Shown here one piece after another: positions 9,649 through 51,544 of a stretch of DNA of 64,000 nucleotides (the stretch's first letter is position 1; every line of letters begins with the position of its first letter). A program made the position numbers and the translations under genes. Below the pieces are notes generated by a model that was not told the origin of the DNA, ran no database searches, and saw only the letters and a program-made list of their open reading frames with translations. The DNA comes from Saccharolobus solfataricus P2 (lineage in GTDB: Archaea; Thermoproteota; Thermoprotei_A; Sulfolobales; Sulfolobaceae), in assembly GCF_000007005.1 (NCBI RefSeq), contig NC_002754.1, one strand, 5' to 3'.

Positions 9649-10880
9649 CCTATACAGGTTTTATTAGTCGGGTAGAGTAATACTCTCCTCGACTGGGGAA
9701 ACATGGTCGAGACACTATCTGAAGCAAAGTCTTCGGCTACGGGCGTGACTAACCCCTACCGTCGGACTGAACATTGTGATAAAATTCACGAATATAGGTG
9801 TGACAAAGGGGTAGGGGTAATAGGAATAGACGTATCAAAAGATTATTTAATAACTAGTAGGGGGAGGGTGAGAAAATACGAGAACAACAAAGAGGGATAT
9901 GAAGAGATACTTGAAATGAAACCTTGTACAATAGTCCTAGAACCTATGGGAGTTTACGCAATAAGGCCTTCACAATACTTCAAGGAGAAAGGAATAAAAG
10001 TACTACAGGTTAGTCCAAACATGTTATCAAGAGAAAAGGAGTTTAGGGGAAAGAAAACAGATTTTTACGATGCTGAAAAAATAGAAAACATGGTTGATAA
10101 GGCAAAGGAGTACGAGTATAACCCCTTAAGAGAACTAGTAACACTTTACCTCTTCCTCAAGGACATAGAAGTAAAGTACAAGAACAGGTTAGAGAGAACA
10201 CTATTCCTAGTAAGCGACAACAACAAGATAAGCAAGGAAAGGTTAGAAAAACTCGCAAAAGGAGATTTTACACAAGAAGAACTATACCAACTAGAATACA
10301 CACCAATAGTAGTTGAAGAAATCAAAGTCCTAGCAAAAACACTCCTAGAAACGCAAGAGAAATTGAAAGAAGTTAGGAGGATGATCGAGGAACAAGTACC
10401 GGATAATCACGTTTTATTAACAATCCCGGGAATTGGGAGGCTTGCAGCTGGTATTATTATTGGTATTGTTGGTGATATTAGGCGTTTTCCTAAACCAGAA
10501 TCATTTGTTGCCTATTGTGGTCTAGATCCCGTAGTGGAGAGGAGCGGGAAGGCTGTGGTAAGTAAGGGTATTTCGAAGAGGGGTAATAAGTACTTGCGTA
10601 GTTTGCTTTACTTCTTGGCAGGGAGGAATTATTCTAGGAATCCTAATTTGCTGAAGTTTTATGAGACACACAAGGATAGGCTTCACGGTAGGAAGTTGTA
10701 TGCTGCTTTGGCTAGGAAGTTGGCAAGGGTTGTATGGAGTGTATGGTATAATAATAAGCCTTATGAGCCTAAATAGGTGAACCCTTCCCCTTAATCGCCA
10801 CCTGGGTTGAAAGGACCCACGTGGCAATGTTAGCTAATACTATGCTTGAAGTTTGACCGAAAGGTTTATTACTGAACGCC
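9649..10880 (+). mobile_element. IS110-family element (~1230 bp, ISC1229-like), transposase ORF 9703..10776
   Basis: DEDD N-terminal GIDVSKD, C-terminal YCGLDP...SG...ISKRGN; no TIRs; CC core at both junctions (9649-50, 10879-80). Confidence 0.9.
9664..9800 (+). ncRNA. Putative bridge RNA of IS110 copy at 9.65 kb
   Basis: Same scaffold as 25878-26013. Donor guide ACTGAAC matches own right end 10871-77; target guides differ from the other copy. Confidence 0.65.
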
Positions 10881-11366
10881 TCTCGCTTGCATCTTCACAA
10901 GCGGTGTAGATGTAGTGTGAGGGTAAGTCCTTGTGCTTCTCCCTCTCAGTCTTGTAAACTCCAGATTTAATCCTAGTGAATGAGGTAGTCTTATTTACGA
11001 GTCCATAATTTATTGTGTCCTCTAGTATCTTTTTATACTCTTCTTCGACTTCCTTCAACTTCTGGTAGGTCTTATTGTCTACTTTAACCCTTAACTTCAC
11101 TGTCCTCTCCACTTAACTCACCTATCAACTTTTTTACACCTTGAACGAGGACTGTCTTCTTATGACTCCTTATTCCGTAAATTTTCCCAGCGAATGATGT
11201 AATAATGGAAATCAAATCTTCCACAAGTTCTTGTGTAGCATCCTTAGGTTCTTCTCCGAGAACAACCTCAATCCTAACCCCCATCGTTGAGAAGAACTCC
11301 TCAAGGTACTCAAATCCAAAACGCGTTAGTCTATCTTTGTATGTTATGAGGATAATGTCGACGCTC

Positions 11367-12550
11367 CTTATATAAAACATATTAGTCAGATCTGTGTAAT
11401 ACAGATCTGACTGGGGTGTAGGCCGTGACGCTCCTTGGGCTTAAAGCCCGATGGGGAGCTTGGCCGCCTCCAATTCGGACCGGAAGTTGGGCAAAAAGCC
11501 CGAATAAAACATAAGGGTGAGTATACATGGAGGCCCCAGTTGCAGGAATAGATGTATCAAAAGATAAATTAATCGTGTATTTTCAAGGTAAACTCTACGA
11601 GTTTACTAATGATAGGCAGGGGTTTGAGGAGATAAGGAAGATCTTGCCTAGTGGTTGCAAAGTGGGTATTGAGAGTACTGGAGTTTACCACGTTAACCTA
11701 GCAAAGTACTTGAATAATGAGTATGATGTTAGGATTATTAATCCCTTTATACTCAAGAAGTTCAAGGGTTTTAGGGGTAAGAAGAGTGATAAGAATGATG
11801 CTAAAAAGCTAGCAGAAATAGTTGTAAGTATGGGTAGTGGGTTTGTAACAAGTGATGCTAGGGAGTTAACAAGCCAGTGGGATTTTGTTATTAGGAGTAT
11901 TGCTAGGGTTAAGAATAGGTTGAGGAGGGATTTGGTACTTTTAGGCTATAGGGATAGTTTGTCTAAGAAAAACTTGGAGGAGGTTTTGAGGGGTGGTGGG
12001 GATAGTGTTGTCTTGTCTGAGGTTAGGTTTCTTTTGGAGGAGCTTGAGAGGCTTGAGGGTAGGAAGAGGGAGATTGAGAAGGAGCTTGAGGATTTTGTTC
12101 CCAAGGATAGTTTGATTTTCACCATTCCCGGTATTGGTAAAACCTTGGGTTGTATTATTTTGGCTAGGGTTGGTGATGTTAGGCGCTTTAGTGATAAGAA
12201 GAGGTTTGTTGCTTATTGTGGTCTCGACCCAGTTGTTGAGTCTAGTGGTAAGAGTGTTGTCTCAAGGGGTATATCCAAGAGGGGTGATGCTGTTTTGAGG
12301 AGGGCTTTTTACTTGGCAGCTTTGACTGCTATTAAGGTTAATCTTATTATCAAGCGTTTTTATGAGGAGCACAAGGGTAGGCTTAGGGGTAAGAAGTTGA
12401 TTGTTGCGTGTGCTAGAAAGTTGGCTGTTATTACTTGGGCTGTGCTGTATTATAATAAGCCCTTTGATGCTAGTGAGTAAAGCAGGTTTCATTGCGTAAG
12501 TAGTGTGAATTATGCTCGATTTTCAAGGAAAAGTTTTTATACCGGAAGCT
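11367..12550 (+). mobile_element. IS110-family element (~1185 bp, ISC1190-like), copy A; transposase 11527..12480
   Basis: GIDVSKD...EST...KND..DA DEDD motifs, YCGLDP; CT core at 11367-68 and 12549-50. Confidence 0.93.
11384..11520 (+). ncRNA. Putative bridge RNA of ISC1190-like copy A
   Basis: 11-bp 5' hairpin. GACGCTCCTT (11427-36) equals left junction 11360-69. GGGGAGCTT (11453-61) is complementary to the right junction. ACCGGAAG (11479-86) equals the right end 12541-48. ATAAGG (11511-16) is complementary to the left end. Confidence 0.8.
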
Positions 12551-12968
12551 TCCCTCAACCAGTTTGAAGAGCTTCAGCAATCCTTTCCTTTGCGTGTTCA
12601 ATCCGCTTGCAATATCTTTTAGTACTTCAACTACCTTGTAACCCTTTGCCGTTGCGTAATTCGTGAGATAGTTTATTTGTCTCTCCAAGTCCTCTTTCTG
12701 GTCTGCTGATGAAACTCTTGCGTAAATTACTGCTCTTGGTTCTTCCCTCCTCTCTAAGTACTTCTTAATCTCGCTGTAAGGTATCCTGTACTTCCCTCCT
12801 TCAGTTGTTACTACCCTTATTTTCCCTTCTCTAATCCACCGTAGGAGTGTTGAGTATGAAATGCCGAGAAGTTGGCAAGCCTCCTTAGGTCTCAGTAGTC
12901 TTTCCACAAAATTGGTTGATAATAAATGAATATAAAAAGATTTCTATTAACACGAAAAAGGATTCAGC

Positions 12969-13025
12969 CCCAGTTAGGTCTGTATTACTCAGACTTAACT
13001 AATATGTTTTATATAAGGAAGTCAG
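12969..13025 (-). mobile_element. Left-end remnant of a diverged ISC1190-like element inserted in an IS605 right end
   Basis: Reverse complement reads CTGACTTC-CT-TATATAAAACATATTAGTTAAGTCTGAGTAATACAGACCTAACTGGGG, cut by the IS607 left end. Confidence 0.75.
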
Positions 13026-24605: not shown

Positions 24606-25646
<1,041 letters not shown>

Positions 25647-25718
25647 AAATTACGCTAAGACATTACAGCGTTTACCCGTTGCGTAACTTATCCTTACTTT
25701 TAATTCCGTCACGGGCAC

Positions 25719-25802
25719 CCTATATAGGTTGAAAGGACCCACGTGGCAATGTTAGCTAATACTATGCTTGAAATATGACTGAAAGATTTATTACTGAACG
25801 CC
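25719..25802 (+). mobile_element. 84-bp non-autonomous miniature of the ISC1229-like IS110
   Basis: Left end CCTATATAGGTT fused to right end GAAAGGACCCACGTGG...TTACTGAACGCC; CC cores at both sides. Confidence 0.8.
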
Positions 25803-25862
25803 ACTTTTTAAGGGATCATGCACACTCACCCTTAAGTCATTAGGCCCTAGTCGAGGGAAACA

Positions 25863-27092
25863 CCTATATAGGTTTATTAGTCGAGGAGAGTAATACTCTC
25901 CTCGACTGGGGAAACATGGTCGAGAGGGAAACTGAAGCGAAGTCTTCGGGTAGTGGCGTGACAAACCCCTACCATCGGACTGAACATTGTGATAAAATTC
26001 ACGCATATAGGTGTGATAAAGAGGTAGGGGTAATAGGGATAGATGTATCAAAGGACCATTTAATTACAAGTAGGGGGAGGGTGAGAAGATACGAGAACAG
26101 TAAGAAGGGTTATGAGGAAATCCTCAAGATGAAACCTTGCACAATAGTCCTAGAGCCTACCGGAGTATATGCAATAAAGCCTTCACAATACTTCAAGGAG
26201 AGAGGGGTAAGAGTACTACAAGTCAGCCCAAACGTGTTATCAAGAGAAAAGGAGTTTAGGGGAAAGAAAACAGATTTTTACGACGCAGAAAAATTAGAAA
26301 ACATGGTCGACAAGGCTAAGGAGTACGATTACAACCCCTTAAAGGAATTAGTAACACTCTACCTCTTCCTAAAGGACATAGAGACGAAATACAAGAACAG
26401 GCTAAAGAGAGCACTATTCCTAGTAAGCGATAACGATAAGGTAAGCAAGGACAGGTTGGAAAAACTTGCGAAAGGAGATTTCACACAGGAAGAACTATAC
26501 CAACTTGAATACACCCCCTTAGTACTTGAGGAAATCAAAATCCTGGCTAAAAACCTCCTAGAAACGCAAGAGAGGTTGAAGGAGGTTAGGAGGATGATTG
26601 AGGGGCAAGTCCCTCAAGACCACGTCCTATTAACGATACCAGGTGTTGGGAGGCTTGCAGCTGGGGTTATTATTGGTGTTGTTGGTGATGTTAGGCGTTT
26701 TCCCAAGCCAGAATCATTTGTTGCCTATTGTGGTCTAGATCCCGTAGTGGAGAGGAGCGGGAAGGCTGTGGTAAGTAGGGGGATTTCCAAGAGGGGTAAT
26801 AAGTACTTGCGTAGCTTGTTCTACTTTTTAGCAATGAGGAGTTATTCTAGGAACCCAACCTTATTGAAGTTTTATGAAACACACAAGGATAGGTTGAAGG
26901 GTAAGAAGTTGTATGTCGCTTTGGCTAGGAAGTTGGCAAGGGTTGTTTGGAGTGTTTGGTATAATAATAGGCCTTATGAGCCTAAATAAGTAAGCCCTCC
27001 CCCGAATCACCACGTGGGTTGAAAGGACCCACGTGGCAATGTTAGCTAGTACTATGCTTGAAGTTTGAGCGAAAGATTTATTACTGAACGCC
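25863..27092 (+). mobile_element. IS110-family element, 1230 bp (ISC1229-like), transposase ORF 25916..26989
   Basis: DEDD and YCGLDP motifs; CC core at 25863-64 and 27091-92. Confidence 0.93.
25878..26013 (+). ncRNA. Putative bridge RNA
   Basis: Four guide segments match own flanks and ends (see findings). Confidence 0.85.
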
Positions 27093-27394
27093 ACTACCCT
27101 CCCATCCACACTTTTATCACTTCCCAAACCTCGTGAGTAGTACCCGTCATCAGTTAGGGGGATCATCAATAAAAAATACATTAGTAATAATATATAGACA
27201 TAAACTCACATCAAAACGATATTTAGAATTGATTAAAACTAACTAGTAGTTACGTAGAGGCGTTATAGTCTTTTTCTTGTTAGCTTAGTCAATTTCCATA
27301 AATCCAATTATTATGACCTTTTCGTTTTGGAAGGGTAAAGTTTGGCGAAAAGTGCCAATAGCTAATAATAGTCTCATTTAACACTGCTAAGCAG

Positions 27395-33059: not shown

Positions 33060-34571
33060 CTGACTTTCTCCCCGCCCTGAAAGGGCGATGGTTCCCCTTC
33101 CAGAGGGATCATCGTTCCCACCATCGATTCGGGTTTACATCTCTCATCTGGTGGGCAGTCGAGTGGATCAGAGATCCACTCCCATTCGAATAGGGGACTT
33201 TCATCCATAACGTCTAGTCCCTTAAGAAATACTAGATGCTCCTCCCACAGTCCCATTAAGCCCTCAATCGAGCTGGGGAGCTTCCGGTATAAAAACTTTT
33301 CCTTGAAAATCGAGCATAATTCACACTACTTACGCAAGTGATGAAACCTGCTTTACTCACTAGCATCAAAGGGCTTATTATAATACAGCACAGCCCAAGT
33401 AATAACAGCCAACTTCCTTGCACATGCAACAATCAACTTCTTACCCTTTAACCTACCCTTGTGCTCCTCATAAAAACGCTTGATAACAGGATTAACCTTG
33501 ATGGCAGTCAAAGCTGCAAGATAGAAAGCCCTCCTCAAAACAGCGTCACCTTTTTTAGAAATACCTCTCGATACAACACTCTTACCACTAGACTCAACAA
33601 CTGGGTCAAGACCACAATAAGCAACAAACCTCTTCTTATCACTAAAGCGCTTAACATCACCAACCCTAGCCAAAATAATACAACCCAAGGTTTTACCAAT
33701 ACCAGGAATAGTGAAAATCAAACTATCCTTGGAAACAACATTCTCAAGCTCTTTCTCAATCTCCCTCTTCCTAGTTTTAAGCCTCTCAAGCTCCTCCAAA
33801 AGAAACCTAACCTCAGCCAAGACAATACTATCCCCACCCCTCAAAACCTCCTCCAAATTCCTCTTTGACAAACTATCCCTATAGCCTAGAAGTACCAAAT
33901 CCCTCCTCAACCTATTCTTAACCCTAGCAATACTCCTAGTAACAAAATCCCACTGGCTAGTCAACTCCCTAGCATCACTTGTTGTAAACCCACTACACAT
34001 ACTTACAACTAATTCCGCAAGCTTTTTAGCATCATTCTTATCACTCTTCTTACCCCTAAAATCCTTGAACTTCTTGAGAATAAAGGGATTAATGATCCTA
34101 ACATCATACTCACCCATCAAGTACTTTGCTAGGTTAACGTGGTAAACTCCAGTACTCTCAATACCCACTTTGCAACCCTTAGGTAAGATCTTCCTTATCT
34201 CCTCATAACCTCGCTTATCATTAGTAAACTCGTAGAGTTTACCTTGAAAATACACGATTAATTTATCTTTTGATACATCTATTCCTGCAACTGGGGCCTC
34301 CAATTATACTCACCCTTATGTTTTATTCGGGCTTTTTGCCCAACTTCCGGTCCGAATTGGAGGCGGCCAAGCTCCCCATCGGGCTTTAAGCCCAAGGAGC
34401 GTCACGGCCTACACCCCAGTCAGATCTGTATTACACAGATCTGACTAATATGTTTTATATAAGGAGCGCCGTTAGCATCACTAAAAGATATCTCAACAAG
34501 GAAGTATTTAAATATAAGGGGCTATCCATCCCCGCTGGCGAGGCTTTCCTCCCCCTTAACCTCCAATTTTT
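33060..34571 (-). mobile_element. ~330-bp tnpB-less IS605 MITE (SMN1-sized) interrupted by IS110
   Basis: TTAC-preceded left end at 34571; right end ...GAAAGTCAG at 33060; retains tnpB tail ([13 protein letters not shown]-like); 329 bp after removing IS110. Confidence 0.75.
33279..34463 (-). mobile_element. ISC1190-like IS110 copy B, transposase 33353..34303
   Basis: Highly similar to copy A; CT core at both junctions; target GGCGCTC-CT-CCCCAG. Confidence 0.93.
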
Positions 34572-43219: not shown

Positions 43220-46200
43220 GGGCTGAATCCTTTCTCACGTTAATAGAAATCTTTTTATATTTATTTATTATCAACTAATCTTGTGGAGAGACTACTGAGG
43301 CCTAAGGAGGCTTGCCAACTGCTCAGCATTTCATACTCAACACTCCTACGGTGGATTAGAGAAGGAAAAATAAAGGTGGTAACGACTGAAGGAGGGAAGT
43401 ATAGGATACCTTACAGCGAGATAAAGAAGTACTTAGAGAAGAGGGAAGAGACGAGGGCTGTAATTTATGCAAGAGTTTCGTCAGCAGACCAGAGAGAAGA
43501 CTTGGAAAGACAAATAAACTACCTAACGAACTACGCAACGGCAAAGGGTTACAAGGTAGTTGAAGTACTGAAAGATATTGCAAGCGGGTTAAACACACAA
43601 AGGAAAGGATTGCTTAAGTTATTCAAACTTGTTGAGGGGAGCTTCCGGTATAAAAACCTTTCCATGAAAAATCGAGCATAGTCCACACTACTTACGCAAG
43701 TGATGAAACCTGCTTTACTCACTAGCATCAAAGGGCTTATTATAATACAGCACAGCCCAAGTAATAACAGCCAATTTCCTTGCACAAGCAGTAATCAACT
43801 TCTTACCCTTTAACCTACCCTTGTGCTCCTCATAAAAACGCTTGATAACAGGATTAACCTTGATGGCAGTCAAAGCTGCAAGATAGAAAGCCCTCCTCAA
43901 AACAGCGTCACCTTTTTTAGAAATACCTCTCGATACAACACTCTTACCACTAGACTCAACAACTGGGTCAAGACCACAATAAGCAACAAACCTCTTCTTA
44001 TCACTAAAGCGCTTAACATCACCAACCCTAGCCAAAATAATACAACCCAAGGTTTTACCAATACCAGGAATAGTGAAAATCAAACTATCCTTGGAAACAA
44101 AATCCTCAAGCTCCTTCTCAATCTCCCTCTTCCTACCCTCAAGCCTCTCAAGCTCCTCCAAAAGAAACCTAACCTCAGCCAAGACAATACTATCCCCACC
44201 CCTCAAAACCTCCTCCAAATTTTTCTTAGACAAACTATCCCTATAGCCTAAAAGTACCAAATCCCTCCTCAACCTATTCTTAACCCTAGCAATACTCCTA
44301 GTAACAAAATCCCACTGGCTAGTCAACTCCCTAGCATCACTTGTTGTAAACCCACTACACATACTTACAACTAATTCCGCAAGCTTTTTAGCATCATTCT
44401 TATCACTCTTCTTACCCCTAAAATCCTTGAACTTCTTGAGAATAAAGGGATTAATGATCCTAACATCATACTCATTATTCAAGTACTTTGCTAGGTTAAC
44501 GTGGTAAACTCCAGTACTCTCAATACCCACTTTGCAACCCTTAGGTAAGATCTTCCTTATCTCCTCATAACCTCGCTTATCATTAGTAAACTCGTAGAGT
44601 TTACCTTGAAAATACACGATTAATTTATCTTTTGATACATCTATTCCTGCAACTGGGGCCTCCAATTGTACTCACCCTTATGTTTTATTCGGGCTTTTTG
44701 CCCAACTTCCGGTCCGAATTGGAGGAGGCCAAGCTCCCCGTCGAGCTTTAGGCCCAGAGGAGTCAACGGCCTACACCCCAGTCAGATCTGTATTACACAG
44801 ATCTGACTAATATGTTTTATATAAGGAGTGTCGACATCGTATTAATAACATACAAAGATAGGTTAACAAGGTTCGGTTTCGAGTACATTGAGGAGTTCTT
44901 CTCAACCATGGGAGTTAAGATTGAAGTAGTTTTCGGTGAGGAGCCCAAAGATGACGCACAAGAGCTAGTTGAGGACTTAATCTCAATCATTACCTCATTC
45001 GCTGGGAAAATTTACGGAATGAGGAGTCACAAGAAAACACTCCTAGTTCAAGGTGTAAAAAAGTTAATAGGTGAGTTAAGTGGAGAGGACAGTGAAGTTA
45101 AGGGTTAAGGTTGATTATTCTACATACTCAGCACTTAAGGAGGTCGAGAAGGAGTACAGAGAGGTTCTAGAGGACGCAATAAATTATGGGCTGTCAAACA
45201 AAACTACCTCCTTCACCAGGATTAAAGCTGGAGTTTACAAGACTGAGAGGGAGAAACATAAGGACTTACCCTCCCATTATATTTACACAGCTTGTGAGGA
45301 TGCAAGCGAGAGATTAGACAGTTTTGAGAAGTTAAAGAAGAGAGGTAGGAGTTACACTGAGAAACCGTCAGTGAGGAGAGTTACTATTCACCTCGACGAT
45401 CATCTGTGGAAGTTCAACCTCGACACGATTTCAATTTCCACAAAGAGGAGTAGGATTCTCATTTCACCAACCTTCCCTAAGATCTTCTGGAGATATTATA
45501 ACACGGAGTGGAGGATTGCGAGTGAGGCCAGGTTTAGGCTGATGAAGGGGAATGTTGTAGAGTTCTACGTCATTTTTAAGAGAGATGAGCCTAAACCTTA
45601 TGAACCTAAAGCGTTTATTCCCGTCGACCTTAACGAGAATTCGGTCTCGGTGCTCATCAACAGTAAACCCTTATTGCTTGAGACTAACACTAAGAAAATT
45701 ACTCTGGGCTATGAGTATAGGAGGAAGGCAATAACTACTGGTAAGTCAACTAAGGATAGGGAAGTGAGGAGGAAGTTAAAGAGGCTGAGGGAGAGGAATA
45801 AGAAAGTAGACATTAGGAGGAAATTAGCTAAGCTAATCGTTAAAGAGGCTTTTGAAAGTAGGAGTGCAATTGTCTTGGAGGACTTGCCAAGGAGAACTCC
45901 GGAGCATATGATAAAGGACGTGAAGGATAAACAGCTTAGGTTGAGGATTTATAGATCTGCATTTTCCTCAATGAAGAACGCTATTATTGAGAAGGCTAGG
46001 GAGTTTGGTGTCCCCGTGGTCTTAGTTAACCCATCTTATACTTCCACTGTTTGCCCAATTCATGGGGCGAATATCGTTTACCAACTCGATGGGGGCGATG
46101 CCCCAAGGGTTGGTGTTTGTGAGAAGGGGAAGGAAAAGTGGCATAGGGATGTAGTTGCACTGTACAACTTAGCGAGGAGAGCTGGAGATGTGAGCCCCGT

Positions 46201-49091: not shown

Positions 49092-51544
<2,453 letters not shown>

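Follow-up and report, generated by a model that had tools for sequence, protein, structure and literature searches.

The insertion sequence ISC1229 (IS110 family) occupies positions 25863-27092, both CC cores included, of a 64,000-nucleotide stretch of the Saccharolobus solfataricus P2 genome (contig NC_002754.1), hereafter the window. We consider this a probably active IS110-family copy whose first ~165 nt encode a predicted bridge RNA, and estimate the probability of this reading at roughly 0.87. It is carried by the boundaries and CC core of the element, the covariation of the fold, the hypervariability of the guides, the covariation of the guides with the flanking DNA, and the homology of the encoded protein. 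From natural covariation and homology we infer that the terms RNA and programmable apply to ISC1229. An earlier reading of the same DNA, the original prediction, had proposed four guides in the left end, each matching a junction of the element, and a CC core.

Boundaries and core of the ISC1229 copy

ISC1229 copies of strain P2 have been listed at 1,745,648-1,746,880, 1,761,872-1,763,092 and 1,761,726-1,761,802 in a paper on Cbp1 (PMC10883916). Two full copies are present in the window, at 9649-10880 and 25863-27092 and 16,213 bp apart. The published spacing agrees with these two copies and with a short remnant at 25721-25802, indicating that the element is ISC1229 itself. The body of the studied copy (25865-27090, plus strand; 1,761,872-1,763,092 in the published P2 coordinates) runs from the left end TATATAGG to the right end ACTGAACG. 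Features described below lie on the plus strand unless stated otherwise. The left target GAGGGAAACA (25853-25862), whose first 9 nt equal the left target guide, is followed by the left copy of the CC core (25863-25864), the only sequence common to both junctions. The last bases of the right end form the left donor ACTGAACG (27083-27090). They are followed by the right copy of the core (27091-27092), placed by the junction reading and the empty site, and by the right target ACTACCC (27093-27099), the reverse complement of the right target guide.

An unoccupied site, GTCGAGGGAAACACCACTACCCTCCCATCC, was found in one metagenome locus (L040; loci are denoted by L numbers), where the left and right targets are contiguous and read GAGGGAAACA-CC-ACTACCC. 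Locus L044 carries a variant of the same site. Compared with the empty site, the occupied site has gained TATATAGG...ACTGAACG (ACTGAACGCC including the core), that is, the body plus one CC, and the other CC must therefore come from the target. CC is preceded by A in the left junction and by G in the right one, which places the crossover no further left and identifies CC as the core, as had been claimed. An AC core 3 nt leftward, in an IS621-like geometry, was considered and is ruled out by the empty site and by the A/G difference, which stays with the left arm. No inverted repeat relates the end TATATAGG to the end ACTGAACG, and there is no duplication beyond the core. At rare ISC1229 junctions, CT or AC is found in place of CC (L017, L028, L059, and L103).

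Guide matches of the studied copy

The left target guide GAGGGAAAC (25924-25932) is identical to the left flank (25853-25861), and the right junction CGCCACTACCC (27089-27099) is matched, as an exact reverse complement, by GGGTAGTGGCG (25948-25958). For the donor ends, ACTGAAC (25979-25985) equals the right end (27083-27089), and ATATAGGTG (26005-26013) is the exact reverse complement of the left junction CACCTATAT (25861-25869). All four matches had been reported in the original prediction, and direct reading of the sequence confirms each of them. The left end CCTATATAGG is a perfect palindrome, and the right donor guide window also matches it in the same sense (ATATAGGT, 8 nt); the palindrome thus makes the strandedness of the right donor guide unreadable from this copy alone. 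The predicted target would be GAGGGAAACACCACTACCC (duplex form GTCGAGGGAAACACCACTACCCTCC), and the predicted donor or circle junction would be ACTGAACGCCTATATAGG (duplex form TTATTACTGAACGCCTATATAGGTTT).

Matches of this length could arise by chance in an AT-rich and repeat-rich genome. All 5,929 CC dinucleotides of the window were therefore treated as pseudo-insertion sites and compared with the 176-nt left end, a crude comparison, in which a match may lie anywhere in the left end, that we quote for its joint criterion only. Matches of 7 nt are indeed common, with a left match of at least 7 nt at 112 of the 5,929 pseudo-sites. However, a left match of at least 9 nt together with a right match of at least 7 nt was obtained only at positions inside the two ISC1229 copies. 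Chance is refuted by these joint, positioned matches unique to the real site and by the permutations described below (0 of 20,000), and we give it practically no credence.

Fold and structural covariation of the predicted bridge RNA

The strand 25876-26030 has a minimum free energy of -59.8 kcal/mol (z = -6.2), and none of 200 shuffled sequences was as stable. Its fold consists of a 15-bp 5' hairpin (helix 1; 25877-25909, loop UAA), a target-binding stem-loop (25919-25962), and a donor-binding stem-loop (25966-26030). The target-binding stem-loop has an outer stem GUCG/UGAC, a 7x7 internal loop (AGGGAAA / GUAGUGG), and an inner hairpin (25932-25949). The left guide and the right guide with its handshake bases (GAGGGAAAC and GGGTAGTGGCG, positions as above) lie on the two sides of this internal loop. 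Both the 5' hairpin and the small stem between the target guides (CUGAAG/CUUCGG), which had been noted from the letters, are present in the minimum-free-energy fold. The donor-binding stem-loop has an outer stem CCCCUACC/GGUAGGGG and an inner hairpin (25988-26003). From string matches and the fold, its putative guides are ACUGAAC on the left, followed by A-UU facing G-CC, and AUAUAGGUG on the right, whose AUAUAGG complements CCTATAT.

Among 42 distinct ISC1229-like left ends (mean identity 87%), per-column entropy is highest at alignment columns 66-73 and 94-99, which correspond to the two sides of the first internal loop. The second (donor) loop is invariant except for one position, and the rest of the left end is nearly invariant. 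The structure is 94% paired in these sequences versus ~42% when partners are slid, and only four pairs show compensatory change because the family is young. RNAalifold, run on the ISC1229-only alignment, paired a hairpin arm with the donor loop, an artefact that stems from low diversity and from truncation at the 3' end; the single-sequence fold was tested for covariation in place of that consensus.

A covariance model built from the alignment finds the complete left ends of all four ISC1190-like copies of the window (43-52 bits, E = 1e-9 to 1e-12) and three further ISC1190-like left ends in the collected loci. In the joint alignment of ISC1229 and ISC1190, 95.8% of cells pair versus ~40% with partners slid, a percentage that is somewhat generous since the alignment was fitted to the model; the number of pair types is less affected. 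Compensatory changes are found in 27 of 44 base pairs, including 11 of the 15 pairs of the 5' hairpin, and none of 500 shuffles reaches this level. The donor-loop helices 4, 5, and 7 also covary. Compensatory change is lacking in three ACU/GGU pairs that the energy model places within the donor loop, which is what guide bases, unlike a stem, would show.

The same stems bear on the nature of the guide, which might act as DNA, for example in an excised single-stranded circle, the conserved fold then being a DNA or mRNA feature. The sequence evidence does not distinguish an RNA from a DNA pairing strand, and single-stranded circles have been reported for IS621 (10.64898/2026.08.31.748434). However, many stems are kept by G-U pairs (UG:53, GU:53, UG:52), which would be A-C mismatches on the opposite DNA strand, so one folded strand is marked, as expected of RNA. 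The recombinase is also homologous to those of IS621 and ISCro4, for which RNA-bound structures have been solved. We regard a DNA guide as very unlikely.

Covariation of guides and flanks across loci

A total of 110 loci were compared: 7 from representative genomes, 92 from hot-spring metagenomes (by the conserved donor-loop sequence), and 11 from complete Sulfolobales genomes. The representative genomes were scanned with protein patterns, which yielded only 7 loci because the chosen patterns lie in the N-terminal extension. The complete-genome loci represent one or two places per protein and nonetheless supply the best two-sided cases. A scan of viral contigs with the donor-loop pattern gave no matches.

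Guides and flanks covary on both sides of the core, the relationship across many copies by which the original prediction was to be judged, and the outcome favours that prediction. On the left, 21 distinct 9-nt guides were found, and the guide matches its own left flank at 8 or more of 9 positions in 9 classes and at 7 or more of 9 in 13 classes. On the right, 7 of 15 distinct guides match at least five consecutive bases directly after CC. When the flank sets were shuffled among guide classes in 20,000 trials, the maxima were 7 (left) and 6 (right), and the observed counts were never reached. This background is itself inflated because related guide classes share sites.

Complete genomes provide two-sided matches with mutually unrelated guides. 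For example, L105 of Sulfolobus sp. S-194 carries the guides GACATTATC / ACACTCC and lies in the flanks GACATTATG-T-CC ... CC-ACACTTG. L108 of S. shibatae carries CTTGACGTC / CTTGTCC in CTTAACATC-G-CC ... CC-CTTGTAA; both of its left mismatches are G opposite A, where a G-T wobble is possible. The guides of L110 (S. islandicus), AAGTAAAAC / CACTTCC, are found with AAGTGAAAA-CC ... CC-CACTTGT, and those of L103 (Sulfolobus sp. E5-1-F), TTTTACTCC / CTTGCCC, with TTATTACTCC-T ... CC-CTTGCCT. Natural guide pairs are thus GACAUUAUC with GGAGUGUGG in L105 and CUUGACGUC with GGACAAGGG in L108. The element type of L108 recurs at a second site (L104), where the left flank matches at 9/9 and the right flank at only 3 bases, and L106 matches on the right side only (6/7). 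A single-base compensatory pair is seen in L037, in which the guide GGGTATTGG stands beside AATACCC, compared with the common GGGTAGTGG beside ACTACCC.

A total of 32 distinct insertions could be scored with both flanks. At least one guide is matched in 24 of them (8 both under strict criteria, 14 left only, and 2 right only), and four more insertions would count as matching both guides but for one internal mismatch in a 6/7 match.

The match of the studied copy might instead reflect descent, if the ~200-bp host repeat into which it is inserted were an ISC1229-related relic and the flank GTCGAGGGAAAC resembled GTCGAGAGGGAAAC for that reason. On its 5' side the similarity continues beyond the guide into the conserved stem (GTCGAG), interrupted by a 2-nt gap, the element also holds GGGGAAACA after the hairpin, and the host-repeat palindrome CCCGTGGCG/CGCCACGGG is reminiscent of the right-end hairpin. 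But the right guide and the right flank are related by complementarity and not by identity; unrelated guide classes match unrelated flanks in single-copy contexts (L028, L103-L105, L108, and L110); and common descent is at odds with the single-base change in L037. Homology is therefore contradicted for the family as a whole, and for the studied copy we hold it to be highly improbable.

The recombinase and its overlap with the predicted RNA

The recombinase open reading frame (ORF; 25916-26989) encodes 357 aa from ATG 25916, with the catalytic residues D43, E80, D120, D123, and S281. The product matches PF01548 (30.8 bits), PF02371 (91.4 bits), and the NCBIfam model NF033542, 'IS110 family RNA-guided transposase' (194 bits, cut-off 140). 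Matches to solved structures were obtained for ISCro4 (9t56, E = 1.6e-15) and IS621 (8wt6, E = 1e-13), with the DEDD residues and the Ser aligned. By its homology the protein is a bona fide IS110 recombinase and a homologue of the solved bridge recombinases. Saccharolobus homologues are named 'RNA-guided transposase' at NCBI.

The ORF and the predicted bridge RNA share part of their sequence. Upstream of the catalytic IGIDVSK motif the frame offers only two starts: ATG 25916 precedes the target loop and is kept in 55 of 60 distinct copies, and GTG 25958 lies in the target-loop closing stem and is kept in 59 of 60. As no start codon lies between the donor loop and IGIDVSK, the donor loop is translated from either start. 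Two natural +1 indels in the guide windows (L036 and the L003 group) disrupt the frame from ATG and leave that from GTG intact, and among the distinct copies compared there are no indels from GTG 25958 to the IGIDVSK motif. Outside the guides, the column that varies most is a second codon position, and an H/R replacement covaries with a synonymous change across a stem. Selection on the overlap between ORF and RNA looks RNA-driven.

The overlap also raises the possibility that the protein itself chooses the target, with the variable windows in the N-terminal extension (from ATG 25916) encoding a DNA-reading peptide. The conservation of the frame from ATG 25916 agrees with this, as does the annotation of 357-aa proteins by gene callers. 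Such a peptide, however, leaves the nucleotide identity on one side and the complementarity on the other unexplained. Moreover, the indels fall in both windows and spare only the frame from the conserved GTG, and the variable second-position column and the covarying H/R change also argue against it. We attach next to no probability to a peptide that reads the target.

Register and handshake pairing

The left-guide match ends 3 nt before the left end (guide-N-CC, the register of the original prediction) in 7 classes, 2 nt before it in 3 classes, and 1 nt before it in 3 classes. Runs of C blur the register at several junctions, although not in the seven 3-nt classes. The left target guide thus stops 1 nt before CC in the studied copy and 7 guide classes, whereas the right guides include CC, and the right target guide has one register throughout. 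In the IS621 model the core lies within all four guide pairings; this is found in ISC1190 and not in ISC1229. In the ISC1229 donor loop the core faces UU, for which a wobble with the bottom-strand GG is possible. In the ISC1229 lineage the left target guide appears displaced from the core, a departure from IS621 pairing and not from the definition of the family.

Handshake pairing is defined as pairing between the 2 nt that adjoin each right guide and the final two left-arm bases of the partner (PMC11208158). The original prediction had proposed such pairing for ISC1229. In the studied copy it holds for both loops, CG corresponding to the right-end terminus and CA to the left-target terminus. 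The target-loop pair is invariant within ISC1229 and changes once between lineages, reading CG in ISC1229 and AG in ISC1190; in each lineage this reading equals the last two bases of its own right end. The donor-loop side fared differently across the family: its handshake bases UG (26012-26013) are nearly constant while the left-target termini vary (CA, GT, CG, and AC), so this side is unsupported by covariation.

Proposed mechanism

In the proposed mechanism, the target loop would read the target through two guides, of which the left one has the sense of the left flank and the right one is complementary to CC and the right flank. The donor loop would recognise both ends of its own element, the right one as ACTGAAC-G-CC and the left one as CC-TATAT. 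The element would excise as a circle in which the right end, CC, and the left end are joined, and the promoter-like box of the right end, now upstream of the left end, would drive the RNA. The DEDD/Ser recombinase would bind this RNA, which would pair with donor and target simultaneously, and strand exchange at the CC core would give an insertion without duplication beyond the core. In this scheme we infer the action of the guide as RNA, the circle, the promoter, and the chemistry.

ISC1190 as a replicate

Four full ISC1190-like copies are present in the window, at 11367-12550 and 49100-50279 (plus strand) and at 43640-44825 and 33279-34463 (minus strand), plus a left-end fragment near 12958-13025 (minus strand). 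ISC1190 and ISC1229 share the RNA architecture and the right-guide register, which consists of 2 handshake bases, the core, and 5-6 nt. They differ in their proteins (~42% identical), and ISC1190 has a CT core and an ORF starting after the RNA. Its left target guide comprises 7 nt plus the core, as in IS621, whereas that of ISC1229 lies off the core. A CC core for ISC1190 was rejected in favour of CT, based on the occupied/empty pair L042 versus L051 and L070 and on the spacing in an intact IS607 resolvase homologue.

In the four window copies, the left guide GACGCUC-CU corresponds to the left flanks at 9/9, at 8/9, and more weakly in two. The right guide predicts CCCCAT, and the flanks read CCCCAC, CCCCAG, CCCCTC, and TCCCTC. 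ISC1190 has ends different from those of ISC1229 and correspondingly different donor-loop sequences (ACCGGAAG and AUAAGG), of which the left donor guide ACCGGAAG equals the right end. Two metagenome ISC1190 copies with the guide pair UACGCCU-CU / AACAAC lie in TATGCCT-CT ... AATAAA and in AACGCCT-CT; for the second site, empty sites read ...GCCTCT|AACAAG.

In the window, ISC1190-like insertions split two copies of an IS607-family serine-recombinase gene, one into 11332-11366 and 12551-12907 (minus strand) and the other into 43290-43640 and 44826-44860. Both genes are interrupted at the same codon (…KLFKLVEG | RSVDIILITYKDR…), indicating that one insertion sequence is a preferred target of another. 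No empty copy of the interrupted IS607 resolvase site was found in the collected sequence data searched.

Copies that do not fit their own guides

Several observations weigh against an RNA-guided reading of ISC1229. Eight of the 32 scored insertions match neither guide, including the second window copy (9649-10880). The same insertion site can hold elements with differing target loops depending on the sample (L017, L029, and L031 versus L072 and L097; L022 versus L032). The distance from left guide to core is not constant, which is unexpected for a rigid RNA-protein complex. An Rfam search of the left-end region found no matching family. Finally, the donor loop and the element ends are nearly invariant within ISC1229, so the predicted role of the donor loop rests on identity, not covariation.

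The second window copy is a full ISC1229, 86% identical to the studied copy and with an intact ORF. Its guides are GACACTATC / CGTAGCC (GGCTACGGG), and its site, CCCCTTAA-CC-TCTCGCT, is matched on neither flank. Guides carried by other elements, in metagenomes, fit these flanks instead: CCCCTTAAC of L046 and L070 fits the left flank, and TCTCGCC (GGCGAGAGG) of L041 and L098 fits the right one. This left flank is also the end of another repeated element (...CCCCTTAACC).

The occurrence of different loops at one site suggests that guides are exchanged between copies, or act in trans, during or after insertion. Three readings of the mismatched copies appear simplest. The RNA of one copy may act on the circle of another, as all share donor ends. 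Gene conversion may take place between copies across the conserved 18-nt inner hairpin. Alternatively, by analogy, ISC1229 might undergo the 'half-match' recombination reported for IS621 in a preprint (10.64898/2026.08.31.748434).

Non-autonomous derivatives, remnants, and hybrids

Non-autonomous ISC1229 derivatives keep both ends and the whole bridge-RNA region and lack most of the recombinase gene. Forms of 451 bp (L018, L074, L076, L078, and L066) and of ~556-572 bp (L030, L037, L052, and L054) have fixed deletion breakpoints and are found in several copies of the host repeat. Since identical deletions occur at different loci, both forms have been mobilised in trans. Derivatives of 331 bp (L013, L048, and L065) and 477 bp (L059 and L092) were each seen at one locus per form.

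A combined proposal, tentative and in our estimate rather doubtful, is that ISC1229-type elements form a natural retargeting system that works across whole populations and departs from the IS621 model in three respects: the left guide serves as a movable anchor 1-3 nt off the core while the right guide and CC set the cut, part of the RNA is also coding sequence of the recombinase, and the short derivatives multiply as exchangeable guide cassettes. If so, the derivatives would redirect the recombinase of autonomous copies, which would account for the many copies in sites specified by another copy's guides.

Shorter and composite forms were also observed. An 80-bp ISC1229 remnant (25721-25800), followed by a CC core (25801-25802), lies 60 bp upstream of the full copy. 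In it, a GGTT microhomology links 9 nt of the left end (TATATAGGT) to 71 nt of the right end, and with its core the remnant keeps just the donor sequences read by the donor loop; it is listed as a partial copy in PMC10883916. L005 and L007 (~1620-1700) are hybrids in which an ISC1229-type left end and bridge-RNA region are fused to an ISC1190-type C-terminal part and right end, the fusion point being the shared IGIDVSKDKL coding stretch. In L019 (minus strand, ~590-625), a right end, CC, and 12 nt of left end (ACTGAACGCCTATATAGGTTTT) are followed by unrelated DNA. By its sequence, this remnant on a metagenome contig represents the predicted circle or tandem junction.

The target repeat and the right end

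The studied guide class prefers one of two sites ~70 bp apart within a ~200-bp Sulfolobales repeat found beside many genes. This host repeat (GTTTACCCGTGGCGTAACTT...CCGCCACGGGCACCCCTCTTAAGGGATCAT...GTCGAGGGAAACACCACTACCCTCCCATCC...CATCAGTTAGGGGGATCATC) occupies 25640-25862 and 27093-27190 on either side of the studied copy, and 6864-7050 in L044, and includes both of these distinct ISC1229 targets. A different guide pair (L028, L099, and L005) specifies the second of them, ACGGGCAC-C-CC-TCTT, which holds the 80-bp remnant in the window. An Rfam search of the host repeat returned nothing meaningful. The targeting of this repeat by ISC1229 parallels the preference of bacterial IS110 elements for repetitive extragenic palindromic (REP) elements (PMC11208160).

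A right-end hairpin, CCACGTGGGT-TGAAAGG-ACCCACGTGG, is located at 27010-27036 and also at 10797-10826 in the second copy. Its loop and the start of its 3' arm, TTGAAAGG (TTGAAAG motif), resemble the 3' end of the Sulfolobus CRISPR repeat. Strong Cbp1 chromatin immunoprecipitation peaks have been reported in the 3' flank of ISC1229 copies (PMC10883916).

A box resembling a B recognition element (BRE) and TATA box, GAAAGA-TTTATTAC, lies at 27071-27084, 7-20 nt before the core, and recurs at 10859-10872 and 25781-25794. The sequence TTTATTACTGAA is conserved in every ISC1229 right end read. Transcription of the predicted bridge RNA from this box would require the right and left ends to be joined, in a circle or a tandem. 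By the usual geometry of Sulfolobus promoters, transcription would start at about the first base of the 5' hairpin. The box would then be the archaeal counterpart of the bacterial IS110 junction promoter.

Relation to known systems

IS110 bridge RNAs have a 5' hairpin, a poorly conserved target loop, and a conserved donor loop (PMC11208160). ISC1229 resembles IS621 (PMC11208160, PMC11208158) and ISCro4 in its recombinase with DEDD RuvC-like and Tnp(Ser) domains (E = 1e-13 to 1e-15), in the lack of terminal inverted repeats, in a 2-nt core at both junctions, and in a repeated genomic target. The predicted guide RNA likewise lies in the left end upstream of the recombinase, with a 5' hairpin, a variable target loop, and a conserved donor loop. 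Left guides have the sense of the top strand, right guides are complementary and include the core, and in the studied copy the two bases 3' of each right guide match the partner DNA. Differences from IS621 are found in the host, an archaeal hyperthermophile, and in the core, which is CC in ISC1229 and CT in IS621. In most ISC1229 classes 1 nt separates the left target guide from the core, whereas that of IS621 includes the core. Unlike in IS621, the left donor guide reaches the core via a mismatch and two possible U-G wobbles. The RNA region of ISC1229 overlaps the recombinase frame, while the IS621 RNA lies in a purely non-coding end, and the promoter, if any, would be of the archaeal BRE/TATA type instead of the sigma-70 type.

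The IS1111-group seekRNA system (PMC11187229) shares the recombinase family and RNA-specified target choice with ISC1229 as predicted here. Its RNA, however, lies in the right end downstream of the gene, and it has subterminal inverted repeats, whereas the ISC1229 RNA is predicted in the left end, the IS110-group arrangement. The archaeal C/D-box small ribonucleoprotein (Nop5) has been proposed to derive from IS110 recombinases, and 662 archaeal IS110 recombinases have been counted (10.1101/2024.06.21.599552). Like ISC1229 as predicted here, this particle combines a Nop-like domain with an RNA whose two guide regions are bulged, but it carries out RNA methylation and no DNA recombination.

The bridge RNAs of archaeal elements were not mapped in that study (10.1101/2024.06.21.599552), and our literature search found no paper mapping the bridge RNA of ISC1229 or of any archaeal IS110 element. 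The ISC1229 protein is in the ISfinder set of Durrant et al. (PMC11208160), in which covariance models predicted bridge RNAs for 85.7% of the IS110 elements of ISfinder; the supplementary files searched do not contain the left-end sequence of ISC1229. Given the published general principle, the RNAs predicted for most IS110 elements, and the NCBI protein name, ISC1229 represents a known mechanism with some unusual details. These details would be the displaced left target guide, the overlap with the recombinase frame, and the guide-carrying non-autonomous derivatives.

The analysis provides a coordinate-level predicted bridge RNA for an archaeal IS110 element from a host that grows near 80 C. 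More than 12 natural target-guide pairs on nearly identical scaffolds come close to a natural reprogramming experiment and may offer a starting point for a heat-stable programmable recombinase. ISC1229 also supplies archaeal material for the proposed link between IS110 recombinases and C/D-box guide ribonucleoproteins. For the elements themselves, guides of this kind would explain why ISC1229 and ISC1190 prefer particular repeats as insertion sites.

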